A DNA stretch of 64,000 nt from Syncephalis fuscata S228 (Eukaryota; Fungi; Zoopagomycota), in the NCBI GenBank assembly GCA_025786725.1, contig JAHLTZ010000030.1:1-64000 (forward strand), given 5' to 3'. Each line of letters opens with the position of its first letter. Positions within the stretch are counted from its first letter, which is position 1. The notes below the pieces were generated by a model. The model did no database searches, was not told where the DNA came from, and was given only the letters and a program-made list of their open reading frames with translations. The position numbers and the translations under genes are program-made. This document shows positions 21,290 to 64,000 of this stretch, in pieces.

Positions 21290-23870
21290 TTATAATATGT
21301 TTGGATGATCAAATGACTACATATGTAATATTGGCATAATTGGTCTATATTCTTTCTAATGAACATGAATGGGTGGTGAATAACATCAGTCATCAAATAC
21401 TCATAATCGTAGATCAATTATCCAGTATGCATATATCTTCTATCCATTTATATCATTTCCATTGTATATCCATACAACTATATACTATTCTATGGTATAC
21501 AGACAATATATATTTGTTATATATATTAAATCGTTTTATTGCTTAATAAATAATATAGCTTCAATGTTGCTATTTATACTTTCTCATTGTATATTTATGA
21601 TATTCTATAACTGTATAATACATTAGATATGCGCTAGCTAAAACTGCTGTTCATTTGACACTATTTTGTTATTTATAAATATCAACTCATTTATTTTATT
21701 AAATCACTAGCAATACAATTGCGATGTTGTTATTCATTCACATGCTTATCATTCTGCTATAGAATAGACATAAACTGTTAATAAAATATTTATTGCTACC
21801 TGTATTTATAATTGACATGGAAGCACACTTCAGTATAGCTGGATGGACAATCGAGTCAACCGACTGGTGCAGATATGATTGTTTTGTGGACAAGTGTAGA
21901 ATAAAAAAGGGACTATCATCTGATCTAGTGGTGAAATGGCATCCGTGCACCAAAATGGTCCAGCCAGGCGCAATACACCAATAAACAGTCGCCATGTACT
22001 CTACCAATATTGTCCATTCTAATTGGTGGATATATTTTGGAATAAGCTTATAAGGTGTGCTGAGCGTACTTTTGCTCATTACTTCGCTTTCTCTTGTTTC
22101 TAGTTGTTAATATGCTGTAAACTGCTTGTTAATGGAAGCATCTGTTCTAGTAGCTATATCCAGTGGTGAGTGGTCTCCTTGTTGGTTGATCACGATATAC
22201 TGCGTTATGCATTTGAGCTGTGTTGAATGTAGAATACAGTAGTGCAGACTATTGTGTTATACTAGCTAGCAACTATATGGTTGCCTGTACTAGGCAGCTG
22301 TATACTGGCATAGTGTGGAGATATGTGGGATAACAGGGTGTGCAGTACTGTGTTTAGCAAGTCAGTATTGCTGTGCACTCCCCTCATGTTGATGCGGCGA
22401 CCCGTATGGGTGGTCATATGTTAGTGCTCACTTGTATTGAACGTGCACTGGAGGTGTGTTTGATAGCCTTCAACTTGCTGAATACTATCATCGCACACTA
22501 GACTGGTGTGATATGTGGCTTATTCGTACTGAATACCATGCATTACACTGTTTACTTGTGGGTGTTGTTAAACGATTGTAATAGAACACTAGTCGCCATA
22601 CCATTTTAGTTTTCAACTGCCGTGTATTACTTTATACAACACTGACATAAACAAGGACTACGGCCGAAAACAAATGGCATCTCTACTACTATAATGTCTT
22701 AGCGTAGACTGGTTACTATATTACAATTATTTAATAACATATCAGTATTGGCGATGTGTGTTTAGTTGTAATATGTTGTGGTGTTCATGTGTTCAGCTCT
22801 AGACATCAACTACAAATGGGTGAATCCATAGTTTGGTGCAGCTTATTGCTACGCTTGAATTCCATGGCATTTTATAACATTTATTGAACAGCATCGCCAT
22901 CAAGATAGCAGCTAATATAGAGCTGTACGCATCCGACAAATTTACTTACGCCCAAGTCGTAGTATGTCGGTACTCCAGGTGGACGTATAGTTGCTATATT
23001 AGCTGCTACCTTGTTTAACAACTTTTAACAACATTTCTAGTTTATTTGTATAACAATAACAACAATACACAAACAACTACACTCGTGTACACTATAAACT
23101 ATACGCAAGGAACAATCAACTAGATGTAGGTGCTTATTACTACTAAACAATACTAACGCACTTTTATTATAGCTATTCAAGCATTGGTGCCGGATCAACA
23201 AGTATATCCAAACTGCATTTGTTATCGGGCACAAATATTTTGCATGCAACTTACAATACCAACTATAGAATTCGTTGGCACAAGCATCGACAACAATACT
23301 GTATACTGTCGTTGGTACTATTGTTTGGGCTGGATTCTAAATGGGACATATACTTATCTGGTTTATATTACCCAACACTAACTGGCATTGCTATTGCGTA
23401 TCTGCTAAATGTTTTGGTTTGATTGAAGTGGTGGTAATAAAGAGGGAGGTGGTGGGCATTACACATATATTACATTGAAATGGTAGATTTAATAAAGAAG
23501 CGCATGAGGTGTTTGCTGAATCGACATAACACTGTGACTCCATTACTAGTTTGTCTAATGTTGTGCTTATTATGTTTAATAAAACTATAATACTGGTACA
23601 TGTATTCAATTAAAGTCACTGATACTTGAATGGCTAGATTACAAGTAGCTACATTCAATACTGCATCTACGCCAACTATTTTAATAATAGTGCCAATGAT
23701 TTATTTATTGCTGTGTTATTTATTGCCATTTAACATGATCCAGTGGTCAAATGGCTGCATTTAATAGCATCTAATCTATTGAACATGAGTGATGGTGAAT
23801 GACATCAATCATCAAATACTTATCGTTGTAGATTCATTATCCATATGCATATATTCAGTATACATATAGA
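21290..23870 (+). mobile_element. Cassette A copy 1: TIR module + ~2.3-kb non-coding body + second direct TIR module (23728)
   Basis: Near-identical to 28874-31450, 44818-47390, 60790-63360 and the reverse complement of 38180-40753. The same short ORF translations recur in the ORF track. Confidence 0.85.
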
Positions 23871-24599
23871 ATTTTATTATATACTCAGACTATATATATT
23901 ATTCTATCTTTGGAAGTTATTAGTGCATAGCAGTCCAATCATCATGCTACTAAACTCGCTGCATGCTTTGGTTTGCCATAGATCACCACTGCAGTCGTTT
24001 TAAAAGTAGTAGTAGATTGCACTTTTAGTACGGCCACTGAATAACATTTCAGTACCATCAGTGCGATCTACTACTGTCGCTACTGTATATGCTATTACCA
24101 GCACGATCTATAGTGGCAATCTATAGCAAATCAAGGCATACAGTAGCTTTGGCAGCATATGGTCGCTACATTCGTCGTACTGGCAGTTGTGCATATACAA
24201 TAGCGTAATCTGCAATGATCCATAGCATAAACAAAGTGTACAACGAGACTTCACAGCATATGCTCAAAATAACATAAAACAAGCCAGGAATGCACTTACC
24301 GTGTCAATAAAGCTGCCAAAAGCAACGATCAGAGCAAGGAAAGTGATTTGTAAAAAAAGGTTAGATTACAAAAGAGCAATTCAAGTACATAAGTAAATAG
24401 TGTTTGTACATAATAGTAGACAGTCAACTACTGACACTATTTAGATGGTATATATGGAGTGTACAAATATATGGTATAGATATATGCTATCAAGTGTGAA
24501 GAAAGAGAAAGGAAATGTGATGACGTAGATTGTGAGCTGTGAGTCTGTCAGTCAATATTTATAAACAGCCGAGTTTAATTCATTAATAAATGGAGTGTA

Positions 24600-24860
24600 A
24601 ATAATAAAAGTCAATCTACCCAACATGTCGATACATCATAGAACAGATTAATAGTAAATGAACAAATGCATTGAGAATAAAAGTTATTTGACACCAAAAC
24701 TACTCATTATTATAGAACATATACTCAGTATATTAAAAGATCAATTAAATATAATAAAAGTCATTTACACCCAAAAACACTCATTATCATAGAGGTGTTT
24801 GTCAGTATAATAGCGAATGCATTAAAGAATAAAAGTTAATTAATACTAAAAGTCAGTGTA
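24600..24860. repeat. Degenerate ~75-bp tandem repeat x4 downstream of the kinase (also 56510-56760)
   Basis: aataaaagt(c/t)a recurs at ~24603, 24676, 24753 and 24828, the middle units continuing ...cacc.aaaa.actcattat.atag. Confidence 0.7.
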
Positions 24861-25040
24861 GTACAATACATATCAACGGTTACTACATTATAAAGATGAA
24901 CAATGGCTTACATATTAAATAGAATAAAAATAATAGTATTTATTTATAATATATAAGTAATTAATGTACATACAAGATGAGACAACTATGCAGTATGATT
25001 AGTATTGTGATTTGTATAATTGTTAGTAAGTACTTACCTT

Positions 25041-27403
25041 TTATTTAGCATTCTTTTTGCTAAAACGGACCTTGCGAGGTGGCAGACTCCCTTTGTTTTT
25101 GACGCACAATGTCTTGTATTTGGAATAACGGATGCGTTTTGGACTGCGGGTTGGAGGACTAGGTGCTATATGCCGCCGTGTTCCTGTTACCCGTGGTGGC
25201 GATACACGTGCTGGTGCTGGTGCAACAGCTACTGCTGGCGTGACCGGTGGAGCTGTTACCGGTGTAGTAGCTGTTGCTGTTGGTGGTGGAGCTGTTACTG
25301 GTGTAGTAGCTGTTGGTGGTGGTGGCTGTAATGCTGGTGGTGGAGGTGGAGGTGGAGGCGGTGGTGCTGGTGCTGATCCATTGTTGAACCAAGAACAGTT
25401 CAATGCCTGGGCGACGGTATACCGTGTGGTACTATCTAGATCTAGTAATCCTTCCATCAATTGAATGGCTGCAGTGTATTAGTTAATGTTAATAAAAAAT
25501 ATATAACTTACCTTGATTACTTAACCCGTTGATTCTTCCCCGGCCAAATGTGGGCGGATTCTGTAGTATACGCCTCATATACATAGATTGGGTCTTTACT
25601 ATGCTATATGGGCAGCGTCCTAATTAACAGTATTAAACAGTTAGTATTTGCTTTTGTTTTTGTTTGCACTTACCCAGTAACATCGTATGGAGCGTTGCTC
25701 CCAAGCCCCACATATCGGCGGGCTTTCCATACCCCTTAGCATTCAACAATGCTGAAGGTAGCCGATCTTTGGCCCCAGGCATGCTTTTGATGATATCCTC
25801 CATATTCTCCCGCCTATTAGTTCCCAAAGCACCTCAGGTGCCATGTAGGCAACTGTGCCGCAAAAAGTGGTCACAGTTAGTGAAGGAGGGAGAATGCATG
25901 CCATCCCAAAGTCTGTAAATACGACTCTGGGACCCCCCTGGCCACCAAACAACAGCATGTTGTCGGGCTATTTAAATGTTAGCAATAATTACAAATATTT
26001 AATAAATACTTACTTTGATATCTAAATAACAATAGTAATAATAGTAATAATAGTAATAATAGTGATTAGTGATTATATTAATTAATAGGTTAATGTATTT
26101 ACCACGATGAATGATATTCATGCTATGAAGGTGCTAATAAATGTTAGTATTTTAATTATGTTTTATACTAGTACTTACTTGAATACCTTCAAGCAGCTGT
26201 TTAAAGATATATTTTGCTTCCATCTCTGGAAGTGGGGCTTTTGAGACGATGTGATTAATTAGATCACCGCCTGTTGCGTACTCAAGAGACAAGTACGTGT
26301 TCAGGGCGGTGACCGTACCATCTAAAAAGCCTATTACGCCAGGGTGTTACCCACCGCACGTAATGTGGCGACTTCATTATTGAAGCTTTTAAGGCCGCTT
26401 CCTTTTGATGATACTTTGACCGCAACACGTTCGCCTGTGCTGCGGTCAAATCCCATGTAGACTTGGCCAAAAGCGCCCCTATTATAAATAATTAGTAGCT
26501 AATTAGTTAGTTTAGTTTATTACTTACTCTCCAATGGGCTTATCAACAAGCATGAACTTCTGGTTGATTTTCTATAACATTAATAAAATAATATTAGCAA
26601 TATTTAAATATAATTGTAACTTACCTTTTCGTATCTTTGCTGTCTTCTATTTTTACAGGCTTATAATGTTTAATGATGTAGATATTAAACGTTACTGCCA
26701 CGCATAATTAGAAATAATCATAAATAATCACTTGTCACTTACTATTGTGGCCAGGTATTGTGACAACACAATCACCAGCAAATCTTCTTGATCCATGGCA
26801 CCCAATTCAATCATTAACTAAAATAATTGTTAGTAAAATAATTACTATTACTTGTTAAACTAACCCATTAAAACATCTAGTTCAATGTTCTAAATCACTA
26901 ATTAGTATTAATAATGTTAAATGCCCATTTACTTACTTTGAATGTAATAAAACCATTTGACTATAATAATTCATAATTAGTACCCGTTTATCAATGCAAA
27001 TATTATACTTACTACTAAAAATTTGAAGCATTGATCTGGCAAAGATGCAGTGGCCAGGCGGACATTGCTGTTTAAATGTGTATGATATTAGCTTATTGTT
27101 TATATATTACTTTAAATAATTACCAGCCTTGATCGGACCCAACAGTATAGCTCTTATTTTTTATTAACAGAATTTCTAAATAAACACTAATTAGATATAT
27201 TTATATTTAGTATTGTTTAACTTACTTTTAGATCCTGCCTCATGGATTCTAACCCATGCAATGGTGTTAGTACGTACGTGCATAGATAGATTGTTCCAGA
27301 TTTCTGGAACGTTATAAAACATCAAATCCTCATTGCTTAGAAGATTCAATGGCTGTTGAACAGCAACAGCAGCTGGAGCAGTTGGGGCGGAAGTAGAAGA
27401 CAT
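25041..27403 (-). pseudogene. FHA-like + CAMK-group Ser/Thr kinase copy 1, frameshifted as assembled
   Basis: Same exons as 56948-59322 but with small deletions: cccaaagc vs cccaaaagc (~25825), gggtgttac vs gggtgattac (~26347), gtatcttt vs gtactcttt (~26633), and VNG to VND* (~26810). Confidence 0.75.
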
Positions 27404-27544
27404 TTTTATAAAGTATAAAATAAAAATAAGTAAATGGGTAAATTTCAAGTTGAAAGTTATGAACTGGAAGTAGAGCTGTAGAAAAAGTAAGGCAAACAAT
27501 TATGTGTATTGCTCTTTCGTTTATTTAAATATTTACAGCATTAT

Positions 27545-28090
27545 AGTATCAATTAATGTTGAAGCCAATGCCACAATTGCAATCAGTATTCTAAGAATCA
27601 TCAGAATGCAAATCAGCGTGGAAGGCAATACAGCAATGCCAACTGATATTCTAAAAAGGTATAATACCAATCAGTATTCTAGGAAATATTGTAATGCCAA
27701 CTAGCATTGGATGCAATGTCACAACACCAACCATTATTCTAGGAAGCATTGCAATGCAAATCAGTATTGAAGACAAAGCTACAGTGCCAACCAGTATTTT
27801 AAAAAAAGCACAATGTAAATCAGTATGGAAGGCAACATTACAATGTAATTTTTTATTCTAAAAATATTACAATGTCAATCAGTACTGGATGCAATGTTAG
27901 AATGCCAACCAGTGCTGAAGATAATGTTATGTTGCCAACCAGTATAGAAAGCATTGCCACAATGTAAATCAATATTTTAGAAAATATTGCAATGTAAATC
28001 ATTATTGGCTGCAATGCTACAATGCCAACCAGTATTCTAAGAAATAGTACAATGCCAACCAGTATTGAAGGTGATACAAGAATAACAATG
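27545..28090. repeat. 30-bp minisatellite (~18 degenerate units) just upstream of the kinase start
   Basis: acaatgccaaccagtatt / gcaatgtaaatcagtatt recur every 30 bp. Confidence 0.85.
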
Positions 28091-28873
28091 TAGGCAAACA
28101 ATGCTTTTAAAAGACACAAAGAGCCCATGTGGATAAATGGTTTATTTTTAGTGTAGCAAACAGGCAAATTAATAGCCAACAATCAAAGCGCCAACCGCAG
28201 CAAATAAAGAAATAGCTACAAATAAACCATTGATGCCATTGAATGTTACAACACAAAGAAAAGACTAACAGCGTGCTGCAGACTTTATAGTGACAGTGAA
28301 ATAAGGGCGTTGTTTTGCATGATGCATAGTAGCATCAAAGTATTGTTCTTAAATGGTGCAGAATGGCATCAGATTATTGGTTCCAGGCGATGCAAGTGGC
28401 AGCAAACTATTGTTCTTGAATACCATTTTGCGTCATCATATTGATACAATATTGCAAATAATGACAATGACAGCAGAACATTGTTCCTAGATAACACAAA
28501 ATGGTATATCATTGATACAGTCATCCAAATACACAGTTTATTTGTTTAAAAATAGAACATTTGGAGCAATGCTTTGTCTTATTCAAAATATGGCATTCTA
28601 TGGCCATAAGCTGAACTAGAAACTATACCAGGAACTGGGTAATTAGCTTTTATCGCCTTTGTATGCTGTAGGCTAAACGAAGTCTATCTAGAAGAACGGC
28701 CATACATATAATAATTAACACTTGTAAACATATTTTAGCAAGCTGAAAAGAATATGTTTTTATTTATCAACATCTTAAGCTATCTTATACACCAGTTCAA
28801 GTAGTTATGTACAAATAGATTGGTAAAATAAATAGTAAAATAAATAAATATAACATTTTTGCAAACATTAACC

Positions 28874-31800
28874 ATTTAGTATGATTTAATGGCCAAATGA
28901 CTACATCTAATAACATTTGTTTTATTGAATATGAAAATGGGTGGTAAATCATGCCAGGGTCCATAATACTCATCATCGTAGATCAATTATCCAGTATTCA
29001 TATATCCTCCATCCATTTATATCATTTCCATTGTATATTCATACAACTATATACTATTCTATGATATACAGACAATATATATTTGTTATATATATTAAAT
29101 CGTTTTATTGCTTAATAAATAATATAGCTTCAATATTGCTATTTATACTTTCTCATTGTATATTTATGATATTCTATAACTGTATAATACATTAGATATG
29201 CGCCAGCTAAAACTGCTGTTCATTTGACACTATTTTGTTATTTATAAATATCAACTCATTTATTTTATTAAATCACTAGCAATACAATTGCGATGTTGTT
29301 ATTCATTCACATGCTTATCATTCTGCTATAGAATAGACATAAACTGCTAATAAAATATTTATTGCCACCTGTATTTATAATTGACATGGAAGCACACTTC
29401 AGTATAGCTGGATGGACAATCGAGTCAACCGACTGGTGCAGATATGATTGTTTTGTGGACAAGTGTAGAATAAAAAAGGGACTATCATCTGATCTAGTGG
29501 TGAAATGGCATCCGTGCACCAAAATGGTCCAGCCAGGCGCAATACACCAATAAACAGTCGCCATGTACTCTACCAATATTGTCCATTCTAATTGGTGGAT
29601 ATATTTTGGAATAAGCTTATAAGGCTGTGCTGAGCGTACTTTTGCTCATTACTTCGCTTTCTCTTGTTTCTAGTTGTTAATATGCTGTAAACTGCTTGTT
29701 AATGGAAGCATCTGTTCTAGTAGCTATATCCAGTGGTGAGTGGTCTCCTTGTTGGTTGATCACGATATACTGCGTTATGCATTTGAGCTGTGTTGAATGT
29801 AGAATACAGTAGTGCAGACTACTGTGCTATACTAGCTCAGCAACTATATGGTTGCCTGTACTAGGCAGCTGTATACTGGCATAGTGCGGAGATATGTGGG
29901 ATAACAGGGTGTGCAGTACTGTGTTTAGCAAGTCAGTATTGCTGTGCACTCCCCTCATGTTGATGCGGCGACCCGTATGGGTGGTCATATGTTAGTGCTC
30001 ACTTGTATTGAACGTGCACTGGAGGTGTGTTTGATAGCCTTCAACTTGCTGAATACTATCATCGCACACTAGACTGGTGTGATATGTGGCTTATTCGTAC
30101 TGAATACCATGCATTACACTGTTTACTTGTGGGTGTTGTTAAACGATTGTAATAGAACACTAGTCGCCATACCATTTTAGTTTTCAACTGCCGTTTTTAT
30201 TAATTTTTACAACACTGACATAAACAAGGACTAGCGGCCGAAAACAAATGGCATCTCTACTACTAATAATGTCTTAGCGTAGACTGGTTACTATATTACA
30301 ATCATTTAATGACATATCAGTATATGGTGATGTGCTGTTTAGTTGTAATATGTTGTGGTGCTCATGTGTTCAGCTCTAGACATCAACTACAAATGGGTGA
30401 ATCCATAGTTTGGTGCAGCTTATTGCTACGCTTGAATTACCATGGCATCTTGTAACATTTATTGAACAGCATCGCCATCAAGATAGCAGCTAATATAGAG
30501 CTGTACGCATCCGACAAATATTACTTACGCCCAAGTCGTAGTATTGCCGGTACTCCAGGTGGACGTATAGTTGCTATATTAGCTGCTATCTTGTTTAACA
30601 ACTTTTAACAACATTTCTAGTTTATTTGTATAACAAATAACAACAATACACAAACAACTACACTCGTGTACACTATAAACTATACGCAAGGAACAATCAA
30701 CTAGATGTAGGTGCTTATTACTACTAAACAATACTAACGCACTTTTATTATAGCTATTCAACCATTGGTGCCGGATCAACAAGTATATCTGAACTGCATT
30801 TGTTATCGGGCACAAATATTTTGCATGCAACTTACAATACCAACTATAGAATTCGTTGGCACAAGCATCGACAACAATACTGTATACTGTCGTTGGTACT
30901 ATTGTTTGGGCTGGATTCTAAATGGGACATATACTTATCTGGTTTATATTACCCAACACTAACTGGCATTGCTATTGCGCATCTGCTAAATGCTTTGGTT
31001 TGATTGAAGTGGTGGTAATAAAGAGGGAGGTGGTGGGCATTACACATATATTACATTGAAATGGTAGATTTAATAAAGAAGCGCATGAGGTGTTTGCTGA
31101 ATCGACATAACACTGTGACTCCATTACTAGTTTGTCTAATGTTGTGCTTATTATGTTTAATAAAACTATAATACTGGTACATGTATTCAATTAAAGTCAC
31201 TGATACTTGAATGGCTAGATTACAAGTAGCTACATTCAATGCTGCATCTACGCCAACTATTTTAATAATAGTGCCAATGATTTATTTATTGCTGTGTTAT
31301 TTATTGCCATTTAACATGATCCAGTGGTCAAATGGCTGCATTTAATAGCATCTAATCTATTGAACATGCTAGTTGATAGTGAGTGACATCAATCATCAAA
31401 TACTCATCGTTGTAGATTCATTATCCAGTATGCATATATTCAGTACACATATACTTTATTCACCTATATCATTCTATTTTATTCTATAATGATATATACC
31501 ATTTTATAACATACTAGACACATTCTATTGTTTATATGTTTCAATATACTTTATTCACACCACTCATTATGCTATACACACTATAGCTTTGACATCGTTT
31601 TATATGCTTTCTCACCGTACATTTACCATTTTATATACTATTCTATACTCGCCTAGTCTTCCTTTATCCAGAACTGCTTTTATGTTTGTTCTAGCTTTAT
31701 TATTAATAAATCTTGACTAATTCTGCTCATTGGTCATGCATATATTTTCAACAACTTTGACACTACTAATCGTCACTTTAGTTTGGATATTCATTATACA

Positions 31801-37937: not shown

Positions 37938-40773
37938 TAGAACAAACATAAAAGCAGTTCTGGATAAAGGAAGACTAGGCGAGTATAGAATAGTATATAA
38001 AATGGTAAATGTACGGTGAGAAAGCATATAAAACGATGTCAAAGCTATAGTGTGTATAGCATAATGAGTGGTGTGAATAAAGTATATTGAAACATATAAA
38101 CAATAGAATGTGTCTAGTATGTTATAAAATGATATATATCATTATAGAATAAAATAGAATGATATAGGTGAATAAAGTATATGTGTACTGAATATATGCA
38201 TACTGGATAATGAATCTACAACGATGAGTATTTGATGATTGATGTTACTCACTATCAACTAGCATGTTCAATAGATTAGATGCTATTAAATGTAGCCATT
38301 TGACCACCGGATCATGTTAAATGGCAATAAATAAAACAGCAATAAATAAATCATTGGCACTATTATTAAAATAGTTGGCGTAGATGCAGTATTAAATGTA
38401 GCTACTTGTAATCTAGCCATTCAAGTATCAGTGACTTTAATTGAATACATGTACCAGTATTTTAGTTTTAATAAACATAATAAGCACAACATTAGACAAA
38501 CTAGTAATGGAGTCACAGTGTTATGTTGATTCAGCAAACACCTCATGCGCTTCTTTATTAAATCTACCATTTCAATGTAATATATGTGTAATGCCCACCA
38601 CCTCCCTCTTTATTACCACCACTTCAATCAAACCAAAGCATTTAGCAGATGCGCAATAGCAATGCCAGTTAGTGTTGGGTAATATAAACCAGATAAGTAT
38701 ATGTCCCATTTAGAATCCAGCCCAAACAATAGTACCAACGACAGTATACAGTATTGTTGTCGATGCTTGTGCCAACGAATTCTATAGTTGGTATTGTAAG
38801 TTGCATGCAAAATATTTGTGCCCGATAACAAATGCAGTTCAGATATACTTGTTGATCCGGCACCAATGGTTGAATAGCTATAATAAAAGTGCGTTAGTAT
38901 TGTTTAGTAGTAATAAGCACCTACATCTAGTTGATTGTTCCTTGCGTATAGTTTATAGTGTACACGAGTGTAGTTGTTTGTGTATTGTTGTTATTTGTTA
39001 TACAAATAAACTAGAAATGTTGTTAAAAGTTGTTAAACAAGATAGCAGCTAATATAGCAACTATACGTCCACCTGGAGTACCGGCAATACTACGACTTGG
39101 GCGTAAGTAACATTTGTCGGATGCGTACAGCTCTATATTAGCTGCTATCTTGATGGCAATGCTGTTCAATAAATGTTACAAAATGCCATGGCAATTCAAG
39201 CGTAGCAATAAGCTGCACCAAACTATGGATTCACCCATTTGTAGTTGATGTCTAGAGCTGAACACATGAACACCACAACATATTACAACTAAACAGCACA
39301 TAGCCATATACTGATATGTCATTAAATGATTGTAGAATAACTGCTAGCTTTCTCTACAATACAATCGATAGTAGAGCTACAATTCTATTTCAGTCGCCAT
39401 TGCAGAGGACCTTCGGTCAGTCAAATTAATTTTCGTGTAACGCAGTCGAAAATCAAACAGTATGGTAGCTAGTGTTATTACAATCGTTTAACAACACCCA
39501 CAAGTAAACAGTGTAATGCATGGTATTCAGTACGAATAAGCCATATATCACACCAGTCCAGTGTGCAATGATAGTATCAGCAAGTTGAAGGCTATCAAAC
39601 ACACCTCCAGTGCACGTTCAATACAAGTGAGCACTAACATATGACCACCCATACGGGTCGCCGCATCAACATGAGGGGAGTGCCAGCAATACTGACTTGC
39701 TAAACACAGTACTGCACACCCTGTTATCCCACATATCTCCGCACTATGCCAGTATACAGCCGCCTAGTGCAGGCAACCATATAGTTGCTGAGCTAGTATA
39801 ACACAATAGTCTGCACTATTGTACTCTACATTCAACACAGCTCAAATGCATAACGCAGTATATCGTGATCAACCAACAAGGAGGTCACACACCACTAGAT
39901 ATAGCTACTAGAACATATGCTTTCAGCAACAAGCGGTTTACAGCATATTAACAACTAGAAACAAGAGAAAGCGAAGTAATGAGCAAAAGTACGCTCAGCA
40001 CAGCCTTATAAGCTTATTCCAAAATATATCCACCAATTAGAATGGACAATATTGGTAGAGTACATGGCGACTGTTTATTGGTGTATTGCGCCTGGCTGGA
40101 CCATTTTGGTGCACGGATGCCATTTCACCACTAGATCAGATGATAGTCCCTTTTTTATTCTACACTTGTCCACAAAACAATCATATCTGCACCAGTCGGT
40201 TGACTCGATTGTCCATCCAGCTATACTGAAGTGTGCTTCCATGTCAATTATAAATACAGGTAGCAATAAATATTTTATTAGCAGTTTATGTCTATTCTAT
40301 AGCAGAATGATAAGCATGTGAATGAATAACAACATCGCAACTGTATTGCTAGTGATTTAATAAAATAAATGAGTTGATATTTATAAATAACAAAATAGTG
40401 TCAAATGAACAGCAGTTTTAGCTAGCGCATATCTAATGTATTATACAGTTATAGAATATCATAAATATACAATGAGAAAGTATAAATAGCAACATTGAAG
40501 CTATATTATTTATTAAGCAATAAAACGATTTAATATATATAACAATATATATTGTCTGTATACCATAGAATAGTATATAGTTGTATGGATATACAATGGA
40601 AATGATATAAATGGATGGAGGATATATGCATACTGGATAATTGATCTACGATGATGAGTATTATGGACCCTGGCATGATTTACCACCCATTTTCATATTC
40701 AATAAAATAAATGTTATTAGATGTAGTCATTTGGCCATTAAATCATACTAAATCATTTGTGTTTATTTATAAA
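37938..40773 (-). mobile_element. Cassette A copy 3 plus part of the MITE interior, inverted
   Basis: Reverse complement of 44798-47634 with only ~3 differences noticed by eye. Confidence 0.9.
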
Positions 40774-44797: not shown

Positions 44798-47700
44798 TTT
44801 ATAAATAAACACAAATGATTTAGTATGATTTAATGGCCAAATGACTACATCTAATAACATTTGTTTTATTGAATATGAAAATGGGTGGTAAATCATGCCA
44901 GGGTCCATAATACTCATCATCGTAGATCAATTATCCAGTATGCATATATCCTCCATCCATTTATATCATTTCCATTGTATATCCATACAACTATATACTA
45001 TTCTATGATATACAGACAATATATATTTGTTATATATATTAAATCGTTTTATTGCTTAATAAATAATATAGCTTCAATGTTGCTATTTATACTTTCTCAT
45101 TGTATATTTATGATATTCTATAACTGTATAATACATTAGATATGCGCTAGCTAAAACTGCTGTTCATTTGACACTATTTTGTTATTTATAAATATCAACT
45201 CATTTATTTTATTAAATCACTAGCAATACAGTTGCGATGTTGTTATTCATTCACATGCTTATCATTCTGCTATAGAATAGACATAAACTGCTAATAAAAT
45301 ATTTATTGCTACCTGTATTTATAATTGACATGGAAGCACACTTCAGTATAGCTGGATGGACAATCGAGTCAACCGACTGGTGCAGATATGATTGTTTTGT
45401 GGACAAGTGTAGAATAAAAAAGGGACTATCATCTGATCTAGTGGTGAAATGGCATCCGTGCACCAAAATGGTCCAGCCAGGCGCAATACACCAATAAACA
45501 GTCGCCATGTACTCTACCAATATTGTCCATTCTAATTGGTGGATATATTTTGGAATAAGCTTATAAGGCTGTGCTGAGCGTACTTTTGCTCATTACTTCG
45601 CTTTCTCTTGTTTCTAGTTGTTAATATGCTGTAAACCGCTTGTTGCTGAAAGCATATGTTCTAGTAGCTATATCTAGTGGTGTGTGACCTCCTTGTTGGT
45701 TGATCACGATATACTGCGTTATGCATTTGAGCTGTGTTGAATGTAGAGTACAATAGTGCAGACTATTGTGTTATACTAGCTCAGCAACTATATGGTTGCC
45801 TGCACTAGGCGGCTGTATACTGGCATAGTGCGGAGATATGTGGGATAACAGGGTGTGCAGTACTGTGTTTAGCAAGTCAGTATTGCTGGCACTCCCCTCA
45901 TGTTGATGCGGCGACCCGTATGGGTGGTCATATGTTAGTGCTCACTTGTATTGAACGTGCACTGGAGGTGTGTTTGATAGCCTTCAACTTGCTGATACTA
46001 TCATTGCACACTGGACTGGTGTGATATATGGCTTATTCGTACTGAATACCATGCATTACACTGTTTACTTGTGGGTGTTGTTAAACGATTGTAATAACAC
46101 TAGCTACCATACTGTTTGATTTTCGACTGCGTTACACGAAAATTAATTTGACTGACCGAAGGTCCTCTGCAATGGCGACTGAAATAGAATTGTAGCTCTA
46201 CTATCGATTGTATTGTAGAGAAAGCTAGCAGTTATTCTACAATCATTTAATGACATATCAGTATATGGCTATGTGCTGTTTAGTTGTAATATGTTGTGGT
46301 GTTCATGTGTTCAGCTCTAGACATCAACTACAAATGGGTGAATCCATAGTTTGGTGCAGCTTATTGCTACGCTTGAATTGCCATGGCATTTTGTAACATT
46401 TATTGAACAGCATTGCCATCAAGATAGCAGCTAATATAGAGCTGTACGCATCCGACAAATGTTACTTACGCCCAAGTCGTAGTATTGCCGGTACTCCAGG
46501 TGGACGTATAGTTGCTATATTAGCTGCTATCTTGTTTAACAACTTTTAACAACATTTCTAGTTTATTTGTATAACAAATAACAACAATACACAAACAACT
46601 ACACTCGTGTACACTATAAACTATACGCAAGGAACAATCAACTAGATGTAGGTGCTTATTACTACTAAACAATACTAACGCACTTTTATTATAGCTATTC
46701 AACCATTGGTGCCGGATCAACAAGTATATCTGAACTGCATTTGTTATCGGGCACAAATATTTTGCATGCAACTTACAATACCAACTATAGAATTCGTTGG
46801 CACAAGCATCGACAACAATACTGTATACTGTCGTTGGTACTATTGTTTGGGCTGGATTCTAAATGGGACATATACTTATCTGGTTTATATTACCCAACAC
46901 TAACTGGCATTGCTATTGCGCATCTGCTAAATGCTTTGGTTTGATTGAAGTGGTGGTAATAAAGAGGGAGGTGGTGGGCATTACACATATATTACATTGA
47001 AATGGTAGATTTAATAAAGAAGCGCATGAGGTGTTTGCTGAATCAACATAACACTGTGACTCCATTACTAGTTTGTCTAATGTTGTGCTTATTATGTTTA
47101 TTAAAACTAAAATACTGGTACATGTATTCAATTAAAGTCACTGATACTTGAATGGCTAGATTACAAGTAGCTACATTTAATACTGCATCTACGCCAACTA
47201 TTTTAATAATAGTGCCAATGATTTATTTATTGCTGTTTTATTTATTGCCATTTAACATGATCCGGTGGTCAAATGGCTACATTTAATAGCATCTAATCTA
47301 TTGAACATGCTAGTTGATAGTGAGTAACATCAATCATCAAATACTCATCGTTGTAGATTCATTATCCAGTATGCATATATTCAGTACACATATACTTTAT
47401 TCACCTATATCATTCTATTTTATTCTATAATGATATATATCATTTTATAACATACTAGACACATTCTATTGTTTATATGTTTCAATATACTTTATTCACA
47501 CCACTCATTATGCTATACACACTATAGCTTTGACATCGTTTTATATGCTTTCTCACCGTACATTTACCATTTTATATACTATTCTATACTCGCCTAGTCT
47601 TCCTTTATCCAGAACTGCTTTTATGTTTGTTCTAGCTTTATTATTAATAAATCTTGACTAATTCTGCTCATTGGTCATGCATATATTTTCAACAACTTTG

Positions 47701-55769: not shown

Positions 55770-56180
55770 GTATGCCATCAAAGCTGTTATATACTTTGAT
55801 TTGCTTAGATTGCTAACATAGTCATTGCACTGACTGCTGTATATGACGAATGTGGTGACCAAATGCTACTAAACTCGCTGCATGCTTTGGTTTGCCATAG
55901 ATCACCACTGCAGTTGTTTTAAAAGTAGTAGTAGATTGCACTTTTAGTACGGCCACTGAATAACATTTCAGTACCATACAGTGCGATCTACTACTGTCGC
56001 TACTGTATATGCTATTACCAGCACGATCTATAGTGGCAATCTATAGCAAATCAAGGCATAAGTAGCTTTGGCAGCATATGGTCGCTACATTCGTCGTACT
56101 GGCAGTTGTGCATATACAATAGCGTAATCTGCAATAATCCATAGCATAAACAAAGTATACAACGAGATTCACAGCATATG
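55770..56180. repeat. Foldback (long imperfect inverted repeat) built from ~85-90-bp subunits; truncated copies at 23944-24262 and 63444-63762
   Basis: 55826-55912 pairs with 56029-56113. Inner agtagtagattgcact pairs with agtgcgatctactact, and actgaa pairs with ttcagt. Confidence 0.75.
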
Positions 56181-56947
56181 CTCAAAATAACATAAAACAA
56201 GCAGGATGCATTACTGTCAATAAAGCTGCCAAAAGCAACGATCAGAGCAAGGAAAGTGATTTGCAAAAAAGGTCAGATTACAAAAGAGCAATGCAAGTAC
56301 ATAGTGTAAAGGTGTTTGTACATAACTAGTAGTCAGTCAACTACTGACACTATTTAATATACATATGAGTGTACAAGTATATGCAATGGATATATGCATC
56401 AAGTGTGAAGAAAGAGAAAGGAAATGTGATGACGTAGATTGTGAGATGTGAGCCTGTCAGTCAATATTTATAAACAGCCGAGTTTAATTCATTAATAAAT
56501 GAGTGTGAAATAATAAAAGTCAATCTACCCAACATGTCGATACATCATAGAATAGATTAATAGTAAATGAATAAATGCATTGAGAATAAAAGCCATTTGA
56601 CACCAAAACTACTCATTATCATAGAACATATACTCAGTATATTAAAAGATCAATTAAATATAATAAAAGTCATTTACACCCAAAAACACTCATTATCATA
56701 GGTGTTTGTCAGTATAATAGCGAATGCATTAAAGAATAAAAGTTAATTAATACTAAAAGTCAGTGTAGTACAATACATATCAACGGTTACTACATTATAA
56801 AGATGAACAATGGCTTACATATTAAATAGAATAAAAATAATAGTATTTATTTATAATATATAAGTAATTAATGTACATACAAGATGAGACAACTATGCAG
56901 TATGATTAGTATTGTGATTTGTATAATTGTTAGTAAGTACTTACCTT

Positions 56948-59322
56948 TTATTTAGCATTCTTTTTGCTAAAACGGACCTTGCGAGGTGGCAGACTCCCTT
57001 TGTTTTTGACGCACAATGTCTTGTATTTGGAATAACGGATGCGTTTTGGACTGCGGGTTGGAGGACTAGGTGCTATATGCCGCCGTGTTCCTGTTACCCG
57101 TGGTGGCGATACACGTGCTGGTGCTGGTGCAACAGCTACTGCTGGCGTGACCGGTGGAGCTGTTACCGGTGTAGTAGCTGTTGCTGTTGGTGGTGGAGCT
57201 GTTACTGGTGTAGTAGCTGTTGGTGGTGGTGGCTGTAATGCTGGTGGTGGAGGTGGAGGTGGAGGCGGTGGTGCTGGTGCTGATCCATTGTTGAACCAAG
57301 AACAGTTCAATGCCTGGGCGACGGTATACCGTGTGGTACTATCTAGATCTAGTAATCCTTCCATCAATTGAATGGCTGCAGTGTATTAGTTAATGTTAAT
57401 AAAAAATATATAACTTACCTTGATTACTTAACCCGTTGATTCTTCCCCGGCCAAATGTGGGCGGATTCTGTAGTATACGCCTCATATACATAGATTGGGT
57501 CTTTACTATGCTATATGGGCAGCGTCCTAATTAACAGTATTAAACAGTTAGTATTTGCTTTTGTTTTTGTTTGCACTTACCCAGTAACATCGTATGGAGC
57601 GTTGCTCCCAAGCCCCACATATCGGCGGGCTTTCCATACCCCTTAGCATTCAACAATGCTGAAGGTAGCCGATCTTTGGCCCCAGGCATGCTTTTGATGA
57701 TATCCTCCATATTCTCCCGCCTATTAGTTCCCAAAAGCACCTCAGGTGCCATGTAGGCAACTGTGCCGCAAAAAGTGGTCACAGTTAGTGAAGGAGGGAG
57801 AATGCATGCCATCCCAAAGTCTGTAAATACGACTCTGGGACCCCCCTGGCCACCAAACAACAGCATGTTGTCGGGCTATTTAAATGTTAGCAATAATTAC
57901 AAATATTTAATAAATACTTACTTTGATATCTAAATAACAATAGTAATAATAGTAATAATAGTAATAATAGTGATTAGTGATTATATTAATTAATAGGTTA
58001 ATGTATTTACCACGATGAATGATATTCATGCTATGAAGGTGCTAATAAAATGTTAGTATTTTAATTAATGTTTTATACTAGTACTTACTTGAATACCTTC
58101 AAGCAGCTGTTTAAAGATATATTTTGCTTCCATCTCTGGAAGTGGGGCTTTTGAGACGATGTGATTAATTAGATCACCGCCTGTTGCGTACTCAAGAGAC
58201 AAGTACGTGTTCAGGGCGGTGACCGTACCATCTAAAAAGCCTATTACGCCAGGGTGATTACCCACCGCACGTAATGTGGCGACTTCATTATTGAAGCTTT
58301 TAAGGCCGCTTTCTTTTGATGATACTTTGACCGCAACACGTTCGCCTGTGCTGCGGTCAAATCCCATGTAGACTTGGCCAAAAGCGCCCCTATTATAAAT
58401 AATTAATAGCTAATTAGTTAGTTTAATCTATTACTTACTCTCCAATGGGCTTATCAACAAGCATGAACTTCTGGTTGATTTTCTATAACATTAATAAAAT
58501 AATATTAGCAATATTTAAATATAATTGTAGACTTACCTTTTCGTACTCTTTGCTGTCTTCTATTTTTACAGGCTTATAACGTTTAATGATGTAGATATTA
58601 AACGTTACTGCCACGCATAATTAGAAATAATCATAAATAATCACTTGTCACCTACTATTGTGGCCAGGTATTGTGACAACACAATCGCCGGCAACTCTTC
58701 TTGATCCGATAGCACCCAATTCAATGCCATTAACTAAAATAATTGTTAGTATAATAATTACTATTACTTGCTTAAACTAACCCATTAAAACATCTAGTTC
58801 AATGTTCTAAATCACTAGTTAGTATTAATAATGTTAAATGCCCATTTACTTACTTTGAATGTAATAAAACCATTCGACTATAATAATTCATAATTAGTAC
58901 CCGTTTATCAATGCAAATATTATACTTACTACTAAAAATTTAAAGCATTTGGCTGGCACGGAGTTTGTAGCTAAAGGGCAGTTGCTATTTAAAATGCTTA
59001 TAATGTTAAATTATTGTTTTATCTATTATCTTATATACTTACCAGCCTCCACCAGCTCCAACGGTGTAGTTTCTATTTTTTATTAACAGAATTTCTAAAT
59101 AAACACTAGTTAGATATATTTATACTTAGTATTGTTTAACTTACTTTTAGATCCTGCTTCATGGATTCTAGCCCATGCAATGGTGTTAGCACGCATGGGC
59201 ATAGACAGAGTGTTCCAGATTTCCGGAACGTTATAAAACATCAAATCCTCATCACTTAGAAGATTTAATGGCTGTTGAACAGCAACAGCAGCTGGAGCAG
59301 TTGGGGCGGAAGTAGAAGACAT
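56948..59322 (-). CDS. FHA-like domain + CAMK-group Ser/Thr kinase (Chk2/Dun1/Mek1-type architecture) with Pro-rich, basic tail; 14 exons, intact
   Basis: Spliced in frame: YTVG..C and LMVNG..GDCVVTI (FHA-like), GEGAFGQV, VAVK, HRDIKPDN, DFG, CGTVAYMAPE, DMWGLG, RYTVAQAL. Confidence 0.9.
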
Positions 59323-59464
59323 TTTTATAAAATATGAAATAAAAATGAGTAAATGGGTAAATTTCAAGTTGAAAGTTATGAACTGGAAGTAGAGCTGTAG
59401 AAAAAGTAAGGTAAACAATTATGTATTGCTCTTTCGTTTATTTAAATATTTACAGCATTATAGT

Positions 59465-60008
59465 AGCAATTAATGTTGAAGCCAATGCCACAATTGCAAT
59501 CAGTATTCTAAGAATCATCAGAATGCAAATCAGCGTGGAAGGCAATACAGCAATGCCAACTGATATTCTAAAAGGTATAATACCAATCAGTATTCTAGGA
59601 AATATTGTAATGCCAACTAGCATTGGATGCAATGTCACAACACCAACCATTATTCTAGGAAGCATTGCAATGCAAATCAGTATTGAAGACAAAGTTACAG
59701 TGCCAACCAGTATTTTTAAAATAGCACAATGTAAATCAGTATGGAAGGCAACATCACAATGTAATTTTTTATTCTAAAAATATTACAATGTCAATCAGTA
59801 CTGGATGCAATGTTAGAATGCCAACCAGTGCTGAAGACAGTGTTATGTTGCCAACCAGTATAGAAAGCATTGCCACAATGTAAATCAATATTTTAGAAAA
59901 TATTGCAATGTAAATCATTATTGGCTGCAATGCTACAATGCCAACCAGTATTCTAAGAAATAGTACAATGCCAACCAGTATTGAAGGTGATACAAGAATA
60001 ACAATGTA
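59465..60008. repeat. 30-bp minisatellite upstream of kinase copy 2
   Basis: Same array as 27545-28090. Confidence 0.85.
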
Positions 60009-60789
60009 GGCAAACAATGCTTTTAAAAGACACAAAAAGCCCATGTGGATAAATGGTTTATTTTTAGTGTAGCAAACAGGCAAATTACTAGCCAACAATC
60101 AAAGCGCCAACCGCAGCAAATAAAGAAACAGCTACAAATAAACCATTGATGCCATTGAATGCTACAACACAAAGAAAAGACTAACAGCGTGCTGCAGACT
60201 TTATAGTGACAGTGAAATAAGGGCATTGTTTTGCATGATGCATAGTAGCATCAAAGTATTGTTCTTAAATGGTGCAGAATGGCATCAGATTATTGGTTCC
60301 AGGTGATGCAAGTGGCAGCAAACTATTGTTCTTGAATACCATTTTGCGTCATTGTATTGCTACAATATTGCAAATAATGGCAATGACAGCAGAACATTGT
60401 TCCTAGATAACACAAAATGGCATATCATTGATACAGTCATCCAAATACACAGTTTATTTGTTTAAAAATAGAACATTTGGAGCAATGCTTTGTCTTATTC
60501 AAAATATGGCATTCTATGGCCATAAGCTGAACTAGAAACTATACCGGGAACTGGGTAATTAGCTTTTATCGCCTTTGTATGCTGTAGGCTAAACGAAGTC
60601 TATCTAGAAGAACGGCCATACATATAATAATTAACACTTGTAAACATATTTTAGCAAGCTGAAAAGAATATGCTTTTATTTATCAACATCTTAAACCATC
60701 TTATACACCAGTTCAAGTAGTTCTGTACAAATAGATTGGTAAAATAAATAGTAAAATAAATAAATATAACATTTTTGCAAACATCAACC

Positions 60790-63360
60790 ATTTAGTATGA
60801 TTTAATGACCAAATGACTACATCTAATAACATTTGTTTTATTGAATATGAAAATGGGTGGTAAATCATGCCAGGGTCCATAATACTCAGCATCGTAGATC
60901 AATTATCCAGTATGCATATATCCTCCATCCATTTATATCATTTCCATTGTATATCCATACAACTATATACTATTCTATGATATACAGACAATATATATTG
61001 TTATATATATTAAATCGTTTTATTGCTTAATAAATAATATAGCTTCAATGTTGCTATTTATACTTTCTCACTGTATATTTATGATATTCTATAACTGTAT
61101 AATACATTAGATATGCGCTAGCTAAAACTGCTGTTCATTTGACACTATTTTGTTATTTATAAATATCAACTCATTTATTTTATTAAATCACTAGCAATAC
61201 AATTGCGATGTTGTTATTCATTCATATGCTTATCATTTTGCTATAGAATAGACATAAACTGTTAATAAAATATTTATTGCTACCTGTATTTATAATTGAC
61301 ATGGAAGCACACTTCAGTATAGCTGGATGGACAATCGAGTCAACCGACTGGTGCAGGTATGATTGTTTTGTGGACAAGTGTAGAATAAAAAAGAGACTAT
61401 CATCTGATCTAGTGGTGAAATGGCATCCGTGCACCAAAATGGTCCAGCCAGGCGCAATACACCAATAAGCAGTCGCCATGTACTCTACCAATATTGTCCA
61501 TTCTAATTGGTGGATATATTTTGGAATAAGCTTATAAGGCTGTGCTGAGCGTACTTTTGCTCATTACTTCGCTTTCTCTTGTTTCTGGTTGTTAATATGC
61601 TGTAAACTGCTTGTTAATGGAAGCATCTGTTCTAGTAGCTATATCCAGTGGTGAGTGGTCTCCTTGTTGGTTGATCACGATATACTGCGTTATGCATTTG
61701 AGCTGTGTTGAATGTAGAATACAATAGTGCAGACTACTGTGTTATACTAGCTCAGCAACTATATGGTTGCCTGTACTAGGCAGCTGTATACTGGCATAGT
61801 GCGGAGATATGTGGGATAACAGGGTGTGCAGTACTGTGTTTAGCAAGTCAGTATTGTTGTGCACTCCCCTCATGTTGATGCGGCGACCCGTATGGGTGGT
61901 CATATGTTAGTGCTCACTTGTATTGACCGTGCACTGGAGGTGGTTTGATAGCCTTCAACTTGCTGATACTATCATTGCACACTGGACTGGTGTGATATGT
62001 GGCTTATTCGTAATGTTTGCCATGCATTACACTGTTTACTTGTGGGTGTTGTTAAACGATTTGTATAGCACTGGCTGTCATACTGTTTGATTTCTCGACT
62101 GCTTTATACGAAAATTAATTTGACTGACCGAAGGTCCTCTGCAATGGCGACTGAGATAAAACGGCATCTTTACCGTTGATTATATTGTAGAGAAGGCTAG
62201 TTGCTATATAAAATCATTTAATGACATATCAGTATATGGCTATGTGCTGTTTAGTTGTAATATGTTGTGGTGTTCATGTGTTCAGCTCTAGACATCAACT
62301 ACAAATGGGTGAATCCATAGTTTGGTGCAGCTTATTGCTACGCTTGAATTGCCATGGCATCTTGTAACATTTATTGAACAGCATTGCCATCAAGATAGCA
62401 GCTAATATAGAGCTGTACGCATCCGACAAATGTTACTTACGCCCAAGTCGTAGTATTGCCGGTACTCCAGGTGGACGTATAGTTGCTATATTAGCTGCTA
62501 TCTTGTTTAACAACTTTTAACAACATTTCTAGTTTATTTGTATAACAAATAACAACAATACACAAACAACTACACTCGTGTACACTATAAACTATACGCA
62601 AGGAACAATCAACTAGATGTAGGTGCTTATTACTACTAAACAATACTAACGCACTTTTATTATAGCTATTCGAGCATTGGCGCTGGATCAACAAGTATAT
62701 CTGAACTGCATTTGTTATCGGGCACAAATATTTTGCATGCAACTTACAATACCAACTATAGAATTCGTTGGCACAAGCATCGACAACAATACTGTATACT
62801 GTCATTGGTACTATTGTTTGGGCTAGATTCTAAATGAAACATATACCCATTTGGTTTATATTACCCAACACTAACTGGCATTGCTATTGCGCATCTGCTA
62901 AATGCTTTGGTTTGATTGAAGTGGTGGTAATAAAGAGGGAGGTGGTGGGCATTACACATATATTACATTGAAATGGTAGATTTAATAAAGAAGCGCATGA
63001 GGTGTTTGCTGAATCAACATAACACTGTGACTCCATTACTAGTTTGTCTAATGTTGTGCTTATTATGTTTATTAAAACTAAAATACTGGTACATGTATTC
63101 AATTAAAGTCACTGATACTTGAATGGCTAGATTACAAGTAGCTACATTCAATACTGCATCTACACCAACTATTTTAATAATAGTGCCAATGATTTATTTA
63201 TTGCTGTCTTATTTATTGCCATTTAACATGATCCAGTGGTCAAATGGCTGCATTTAATAGCATCTAATCTATTGAACATGCTAGTTGATGGTGAATGACA
63301 TCAATCATCAAATACTCATCATTGTAGATTCATTATCCAATATGTATATATTCAGTATAC
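60790..63360 (+). mobile_element. Cassette A copy 5 bounded by direct TIR modules (60790, 63221)
   Basis: Near-identical to the other four copies. Confidence 0.88.
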
Positions 63361-64000
63361 ATATAGAATTTCTATTATATACTCAGACTAGCATATATTA
63401 TTCTATCTTTGGGAAGTTATTAGTGCATAGCAGTACAATCATCATGCTACTAAACTCGCTGCATGCTTTGGTTTGCCATAGATCACCACTGCAGTTGTTT
63501 TAAAAGTAGTAGTAGATTGCACTTTTAGTACGGCCACTGAATAACATTTCAGTACCATCAGTGCGATCTACTACTGTCGCTACTGTATATGCTATTACCA
63601 GCACGATCTATAGTGGCGATCTATAGCAAATCAAGGCATACAGTAGCTTTGGCAGCATATGGTCGCTACATTCGTCGTACTGGCAGTTGTGCATATACAA
63701 TAGCGTAATCTGCAATAATCCATAGCATAAACAAAGTATACAACGAGATTTCACAGCATATGCTCAAAACAACATAAAACAAGCTAGGATTGCATTTACT
63801 GTGTCAATAAAGCTGCCAAAAGCAACGATCAGAGCAAGGAAAGTGATTTGCAAAAAAGGTCAGATTACAAAAGAGCAATGCAAGTACATAGTGTAGAAGG
63901 TGTTTGTACATAACTAGTAGTCAGTCAACTACTGACACTATTTAGATGGTATATATGGAGTGTACAAGTATATGCAATGGATATATGCTGTCAAGTGTGA
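63361..64000 (+). repeat. Start of a third cassette B, cut by the window edge
   Basis: Matches ~23860-24500 and, from 63444, 55863-56408. Confidence 0.88.

Follow-up and report, generated by a model that had tools for sequence, protein, structure and literature searches.

A duplicated kinase gene near the start of a Syncephalis fuscata contig

Syncephalis fuscata is a mycoparasitic fungus of the Zoopagomycota. The window, our name for the stretch of DNA analysed here, covers the opening 64 kb of the 333-kb contig C224 in an assembly of 29.4 Mb, and it holds two copies of a gene that joins a predicted FHA (forkhead-associated) fold to a kinase domain. Our main focus is on the second of these, copy 2, and on a short island within it that departs sharply from copies that are otherwise nearly identical. 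Self-BLAST finds a 7.5-kb unit twice in the window, with 96.4% identity across 7,532 bp, and contig C357 opens with a third full unit (C357:1-7417, 96.0% identity). Every unit holds one minus-strand kinase gene with numerous short introns. The features of the locus are as follows.

23944..31453, no strand assigned: duplicated unit, first copy (self-BLAST against 55863-63365)
55863..63365, no strand assigned: duplicated unit, second copy (self-BLAST against the first copy)
25041..27403, minus strand: copy 1 of the gene, frameshifted as assembled (pairwise alignment with copy 2)
56948..59322, minus strand: copy 2, pseudo-FHA kinase gene, 14 exons, 565 amino acids
59145-59322, 59043-59094, 58930-58984, 58854-58877, 58782-58806, minus strand: copy 2 exons 1-5
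58656-58733, 58537-58607, 58439-58482, 58089-58389, 58011-58041, minus strand: copy 2 exons 6-10
57922-57929, 57581-57875, 57419-57526, 56948-57375, minus strand: copy 2 exons 11-14
58585..59184, minus strand: region coding, with introns, for the predicted FHA-fold domain (residues ~47-145)
56948..58482, minus strand: kinase domain (exons 8-14; Pfam Pkinase), then a Pro/Thr/Ala-rich tail and a basic C-terminal motif

All 13 introns of copy 2 run from GT to AG and measure 43-81 nt, and the open frame closes at TAA. Residues 1-388 are an exact spliced match of the DNA to the NCBI protein P0152; beyond that match our model has two more introns, both of which are also spliced joints in run X2. P0152 is only 400 amino acids long because the NCBI annotation reads through intron 12 (57527-57580). 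Profile searches and folding used P0152 or single exons, and the joined 565-residue model was handled in local scripts only. With exons 4 (24 nt) and 5 (25 nt), the FHA part has one small exon more than a simple reading gives; a 28-nt variant of exon 4 was rejected, as P0152 and the family show the separate 25-nt exon 5. Exon 11 is an 8-nt micro-exon encoding part of the HRDIK catalytic loop, and a micro-exon of 8-9 nt stands at the same place in annotated models of several other family members.

Across the gene body, copy 1 has nine deletions of 1-2 bp relative to copy 2, and copy 2 has none relative to copy 1. Five are exonic: 26812 (2 bp) and 26795 in exon 6, then 26634, 26347 and 25826, so that exons 6, 7, 9 and 12 are affected. 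These deletions break the frame, with a TGA in exon 6 and an exon 9 match split by stops. All nine sites are listed here.

25826, 26139, 26158, 26347, 26619, 26634, 26795, 26812, 26855: deletion sites in copy 1 relative to copy 2

Because the changes are deletions only, mostly shorten homopolymers relative to the closest copy on C357, and lie in a 1.7-kb stretch free of substitutions, the frameshifts are probably long-read consensus errors rather than decay. The second of two further copies on contig C113, L011 (C113:286182-289364), is probably a decaying copy: its exon 12 has a 132-bp deletion covering the activation segment and an insert, and its exon 9 has a gap of 1 bp.

A divergence island between near-identical copies

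We compared five close copies, namely copy 2, copy 1, the copy on C357 and the two on C113. Copies 1 and 2 show 2 substitutions in the ~1,285 nt of exons 7-14, in contrast to a short region of the FHA part.

58930..59094, minus strand: divergence island of copy 2 (exon 2, intron 2, exon 3; residues 60-95)
27013..27175, minus strand: counterpart in copy 1 (exon 2, intron 2, exon 3), of the type common to C357 and the two C113 copies

Between copies 1 and 2, differences in the island number 11/52 in exon 2, 12/56 in intron 2 and 18/55 in exon 3, against 2/50 in intron 1 and 0/52 in intron 3 on either side. Exon 1 differs at 12 of 178 positions, eight of them private to copy 1 and located in the 3' half of the exon. 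The first-pass annotation had drawn the same contrast between a near-identical catalytic half and divergent exons 2-3, and had noted divergence in exon 1 and the intervening intron; all of this is borne out, and both peptides that it quoted are correct. Its count of 12 substitutions in 29 residues becomes 11, and the small indels that it allowed for in the otherwise near-identical catalytic and tail exons are the copy 1 deletions that break the frame.

Copy 2 is the outlier in the island, where the other four copies carry one shared type. Identity of the copy 1 counterpart is 91-92% with C357 and C113, against 75% with copy 2. Of the 47 sites private to copy 2, 35 fall inside 165 of 2,375 bp, or 7% of the gene (binomial P = 7e-31). 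On the AlphaFold2 model described below, the island codes for FHA strands beta2-beta5, including the beta3-beta4 and beta4-beta5 loops. Replacements affect 7-9 of the 15 codons in these two loops versus 4-6 of the other 21. Nonsynonymous divergence (dN) is 0.36-0.53 in the two loops and 0.11-0.19 in the strands, against a synonymous divergence (dS) of ~0.7 or more.

A predicted FHA fold with a degenerate phosphothreonine pocket

An FHA fold is predicted for the N-terminus, as the first-pass annotation had proposed. AlphaFold2, given a 15-sequence family alignment, modelled P0152:1-175 with a mean predicted local distance difference test (pLDDT) score of 78, a core at ~80-94, and 11 strands in residues 47-144. 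When this model was compared with the PDB using Foldseek, all 49 matches listed at E<=1e-3 were FHA domains (probability 1.00), with target-normalised template-modelling scores of 0.6-0.8, up to 0.80, among the matches listed; they include CT664, Rad53 FHA1, Chk2, Mek1, Dun1, Ki67, MDC1 and TIFA. The alignment of the family profile with Chk2-type FHA domains in hhalign (probability 71%, E = 3.9e-5, 89 columns) agrees with this assignment. A family-profile search of PDB sequences placed TIFA and Rad53 FHA domains at the top, weakly (E = 0.1-1.3), and in BLASTP one family member aligns with frog Chk2 from the Y-I-V-G-A strand on through the kinase.

The structural agreement holds despite the lack of a Pfam match. 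PF00498 gave 0 matches at E<=1 in nine family proteins, which matched Pkinase only. No Pfam FHA match appeared at E<=10 in P0152 and two S. plumigaleata members, whereas Chk2-like controls scored 37-108 bits. Searches with single exons likewise returned only Pkinase at family loci, and detected canonical FHA exons elsewhere in the genome.

The motifs that define FHA domains are GR following strand 3, SxxH preceding strand 5 and NG preceding strand 7 (PMC3162421). The hhalign register sets G72-A73 opposite the G-R of Chk2 and P87/C90 opposite its S and H. G72 is nearly invariant and is followed by A, S, T or P in 15/15 aligned proteins, never by Arg; the absence of Arg holds at every locus with exon 2 recovered, S. 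plumigaleata included. At the Ser position most members have Pro and a few keep Ser, and the His position is Cys or Tyr, never His; copy 2 has P87 and C90 at the positions aligned with Ser-x-x-His. For the Asn-Gly site, the TIFA alignment pairs the conserved N104 with the TIFA Asn, and hhalign pairs D108/V109 with N-G of Chk2. The loss of Arg and His, originally reported for the two copies in the window, is thus true of the family in two Syncephalis species, and Ser is gone as well in most members. Because all members examined lack Arg and His, the degenerate pocket is an old trait of the whole family rather than a peculiarity of two copies. It is reasonable to infer from these substitutions that phosphothreonine binding has been lost.

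The kinase half and the C-terminal tail

Pfam Pkinase matches both the kinase exons and P0152, and the kinase motifs are intact: HRDIKPDN (residue 285), DFG (308) and APE (332) are all present, and exons 8-9 encode the Gly loop and the AVK lysine. The best solved relatives are CaMK1, Rad53, Chk2, MARK and DAPK. This places the kinase in the CAMK group by sequence, and with CaMK1 scoring slightly above Rad53 and Chk2 we imply no finer placement within the Rad53/Chk2/Mek1 clade. Outside Syncephalis, kinase identity is ~30-35% at best. A search with exon 9 returned 27 cluster representatives at E<=1e-10, and the nearer relatives of this exon include P0006, a 2,027-residue protein with four tandem kinase domains (33% identity).

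Behind the kinase domain, a Pro/Thr/Ala-rich spacer of variable length leads to a basic motif, R-x-R-Y-S-K-Y-K...R-K-x-R-F-x-K-K (56948-57060, minus strand). The motif is kept family-wide in the two Syncephalis species and is a candidate nuclear localisation signal. On reading the N-terminus we see no obvious signal peptide, and nothing here points to secretion or to an effector role; the conflict and nonself-recognition biology suggested in the first-pass annotation likewise finds no evidence in these data. In a 2023 soil metagenome (X6), one contig of 250 nt matches the Pro-rich tail at 57064-57313 with 0 mismatches.

Islands recur across an amplified family

The proposal of an amplified kinase family is upheld: ~30 loci have a common exon structure, and the family is seen only in Syncephalis. 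The best 30 loci form eight groups of 91-99% identical sisters, plus singletons. Three further sister groups contain islands of 17-46% divergence in loci that are otherwise 96-99% identical, mostly in exons 1-6.

L004/L005/L006/L012: separate islands in exons 3-4 and in exons 5-6
L008/L009: island in the 3' half of exon 1
L028/L029: island in exons 1-2

Together with the group studied here, islands occur in four of the eight sister groups, and the FHA exons in which they mostly lie make up ~19% of each locus. Four sister groups have no island, and a few islands lie outside the FHA exons, in a kinase C-lobe stretch, the intron 10 region and tails. The idea that divergent tracts focus on the two pocket loops does not survive this wider comparison, in which the tracts of other groups fall at different strands and loops. 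Judged by their positions, the variable part is the FHA module as a whole, not the two pocket loops specifically. The exons 5-6 island of L004-L006, the sole further-group island in which the ratio was measurable, has a pairwise dN/dS of ~0.45.

Among the contigs of run X2 are spliced ones from the family, joined at introns 6, 8, 12 and 13, and one that matches the distinctive exon 6 of copy 2. Spliced and unspliced contigs are both present in this run across intron 12.

Probable mosaic ancestry of the gene

Among the five close copies, dS is 0.00-0.03 in kinase exons 7-13, 0.08-0.30 in exons 4-6 and 0.08-0.47 in exon 1. For exons 2 and 3, copy 2 against the others gives a dS of 1.09-1.37 and a dN of 0.20-0.27 (dN/dS 0.17-0.23). 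Synonymous sites in this patch are saturated, with a proportion of synonymous differences (pS) of 0.58-0.63, and intron 2 is 21-27% diverged. The dN/dS ratio is below 1 in every block and at most ~0.5 in the two loops. These values argue against two suggestions made at the outset. Kinase introns are as identical among the copies as kinase exons, so the near-invariance of the catalytic domain reflects recent homogenisation rather than constraint. Diversification of the loops by positive selection finds no support in low ratios, saturated synonymous sites and an intron that has diverged along with the exons. Saturation of dS together with the diverged intron points to mosaic ancestry, not to constraint combined with positive selection.

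Groupings along the gene lead to the same place. The 5' flank, exon 1, exon 14 and the 3' flank split the C113 copies from the rest, exons 2-3 split off copy 2, and exon 6 groups copy 1 with copy 2. Such discordant bipartitions are the mark of gene conversion or recombination among paralogues, and the copy 2 tract is sharply bounded, includes an intron and conflicts in its grouping with its flanks. Copy 2 exons 2-3 are 68-71% identical both to the sister copies and to the distant C350 and C304 loci, whereas the sisters' type is only 54-59% identical to C350/C304. The copy 2 tract therefore resembles any other old lineage in the family, and the type carried by its sisters would be the more derived one.

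We conclude, with a probability of about 0.7, that the island reflects mosaic ancestry by gene conversion or recombination within an amplified, Syncephalis-restricted family of pseudo-FHA kinases. The sequence of events would be as follows. A family ancestor would have lost the Arg and His of the phosphothreonine pocket, and most members the Ser as well. Very recent homogenisation would have made the kinase core, introns included, alike in five copies that lie on three contigs. The FHA-coding exons would carry much older tracts with sharp borders, of which the 165-bp tract of copy 2 would be one. That tract could be an import from a member that the assembly lacks, or a relic left untouched by homogenisation.

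Several observations weigh against this reading. No donor for the copy 2 tract was found in the 29.4-Mb assembly, where the best match over exon 2, intron 2 and exon 3 is 75% (copy 1 and C350); a figure of 88% arises only when the shared end of exon 1 is included in the query. BLAST searches of 30 family loci with four other islands gave no donor above 75-84%, their own near-identical sisters aside. Because the assembly holds no donor, any conversion from an extant paralogue is hypothetical and could have run either way; of the gene-conversion swap proposed in the first-pass annotation, the mosaic pattern stands and the donor paralogue does not. Some of the near-identical copies on separate contigs could be haplotigs rather than paralogues. 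No contig in any public run covers the copy 2 patch, which is thus without read support independent of the assembly. Finally, two other groups each have an exon whose divergence far exceeds that of the introns beside it: 24/52 against 8-9 per 51-58 nt in one, 21/55 against 4-5 per 52-56 nt in the other. Import of tracts alone would not predict this. These two exons keep some room for selection on the FHA domain.

Alternative explanations

The best surviving alternative, which we nevertheless regard as doubtful, is that selection preserves FHA diversity: conversions that overwrite a recognition surface would be removed, maintaining a diversified repertoire with a possible role in mycoparasitism or nonself recognition. 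This would account for the concentration of islands in FHA exons in half of the sister groups and for the two exons that exceed their introns; the absence of donors is what such a model expects, and the beta3-beta4 and beta4-beta5 loops carry replacements at ~2-3 times the density of the strands. Yet dN/dS is below 1 wherever it was measured, the islands are scattered over the domain instead of sharing one surface, and half of the groups lack an island altogether. Moreover, sequence divergence itself blocks heteroduplex extension, so islands may last without selection.

We consider it highly improbable that the loops changed rapidly in place after a recent duplication, whether by positive selection or by local hypermutation. 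Amino-acid changes do cluster in the two loops, and no donor was found. However, saturated synonymous sites at a dN of only 0.2-0.27 do not fit this account, nor does an intron 2 diverged by 21-27% between introns 1 and 3 that differ by only 0-4% between copies 1 and 2; and a tract as near to C350/C304 as to its sisters looks old.

A mis-polished or chimeric long-read consensus, in the patch or in the whole duplicate, is the least credible account: the deletion-only changes of copy 1 in a substitution-free stretch, mostly homopolymers shortened relative to C357, DNA runs that resemble small long-read cells and the lack of a public contig on the patch would suit it, but the copy 2 patch keeps its frame, its splice sites and a dN/dS of ~0.2, which is not expected of random error, NCBI annotates it as protein, other groups show comparable islands, and an X2 contig matches the distinctive exon 6 of copy 2.

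Mosaic ancestry thus remains our preferred explanation of the island. It also carries a caution, as an invariant domain with variable loops resembled the work of selection and is nonetheless explained by mosaic ancestry.

Repeats around the kinase copies

A repeat of ~2.5 kb occurs five times in the window with 95-98% identity, at 21396-23868, 28965-31453, 38178-40662 (inverted), 44909-47394 and 60881-63365. It is part of the duplicated unit, in which it lies ~1.5 kb upstream of each kinase copy; the largest open reading frame of the copy at 60881-63365 is <=104 amino acids. Upstream of the copy 2 start codon there are also a 60-bp minisatellite (59579-59985, 6.8 copies, 64% matches) and a 34-bp repeat (60235-60337). 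A third kinase copy on C224 beyond the end of the window was ruled out, as L039 (C224:63444-64228) is only a 788-bp piece of the 3' flank of the unit.

Comparison with known systems and implications

FHA-kinases such as Rad53, Chk2 and Mek1 usually occur in one or a few copies, and their phosphothreonine pocket is strictly conserved. A literature search returned no paper on a Syncephalis pseudo-FHA kinase family. Like Rad53, Chk2, Mek1 and Dun1, the Syncephalis proteins have an N-terminal FHA fold followed by a Ser/Thr kinase with HRD, DFG and APE; the FHA domains of all four are among the Foldseek matches, and the Rad53 and Chk2 kinases are among the best solved relatives. Unlike them, the Syncephalis family is without the pocket Arg and His, in most members also without the Ser, and without a Pfam FHA match, and it comprises ~30 loci with near-identical duplicates rather than the usual one to few genes. 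Copy 2 also differs from Chk2 and Rad53 in having 0 SQ or TQ in residues 1-46, ahead of the FHA domain.

A parallel for the pocket comes from bacteria. MxiG-N of Shigella and Cpn0172 FHA-2 of Chlamydia also keep the FHA sandwich with incomplete GR, SxxH and NG motifs; MxiG-N does not bind phosphothreonine, Cpn0172 FHA-2 lacks the conserved Arg, and the closest structural relative of MxiG-N is 3gqs, the FHA domain of Chlamydia CT664 (PMC3162421). The same structure, 3gqs, is the top Foldseek match of our P0152 FHA model. The bacterial domains differ in belonging to secretion systems, with neither kinase fusion nor amplification, and the loss of phosphothreonine binding in Syncephalis is inferred only. 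Turning to the mode of evolution, near-identity of one gene part with its introns included, old tracts with sharp borders and discordant groupings of adjacent segments are what concerted evolution by mosaic conversion displays. Here, in contrast, donors are not identifiable and the tracts fall repeatedly in one small domain.

What emerges is a lineage-specific family of ~30 loci in which the FHA fold and the kinase motifs are kept and the pocket is lost, and within single genes of which the docking domain and the kinase domain differ by up to ~70-fold in synonymous divergence. The FHA module may be the part that docks partners, binding them without phosphothreonine, and differences between tracts may give the copies different partners. 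The family therefore offers a natural case for asking what pocket-less FHA domains bind and how gene conversion shapes modular signalling genes. One can go further and suppose that conversion keeps the catalytic half uniform and that selection against homogenisation maintains diversity in an FHA docking domain that works independently of phosphorylation; we think this improbable. If true, it would make the family a cytoplasmic system of variable recognition modules without a described counterpart among FHA kinases, which this mycoparasite might use to sense hosts or to recognise nonself.

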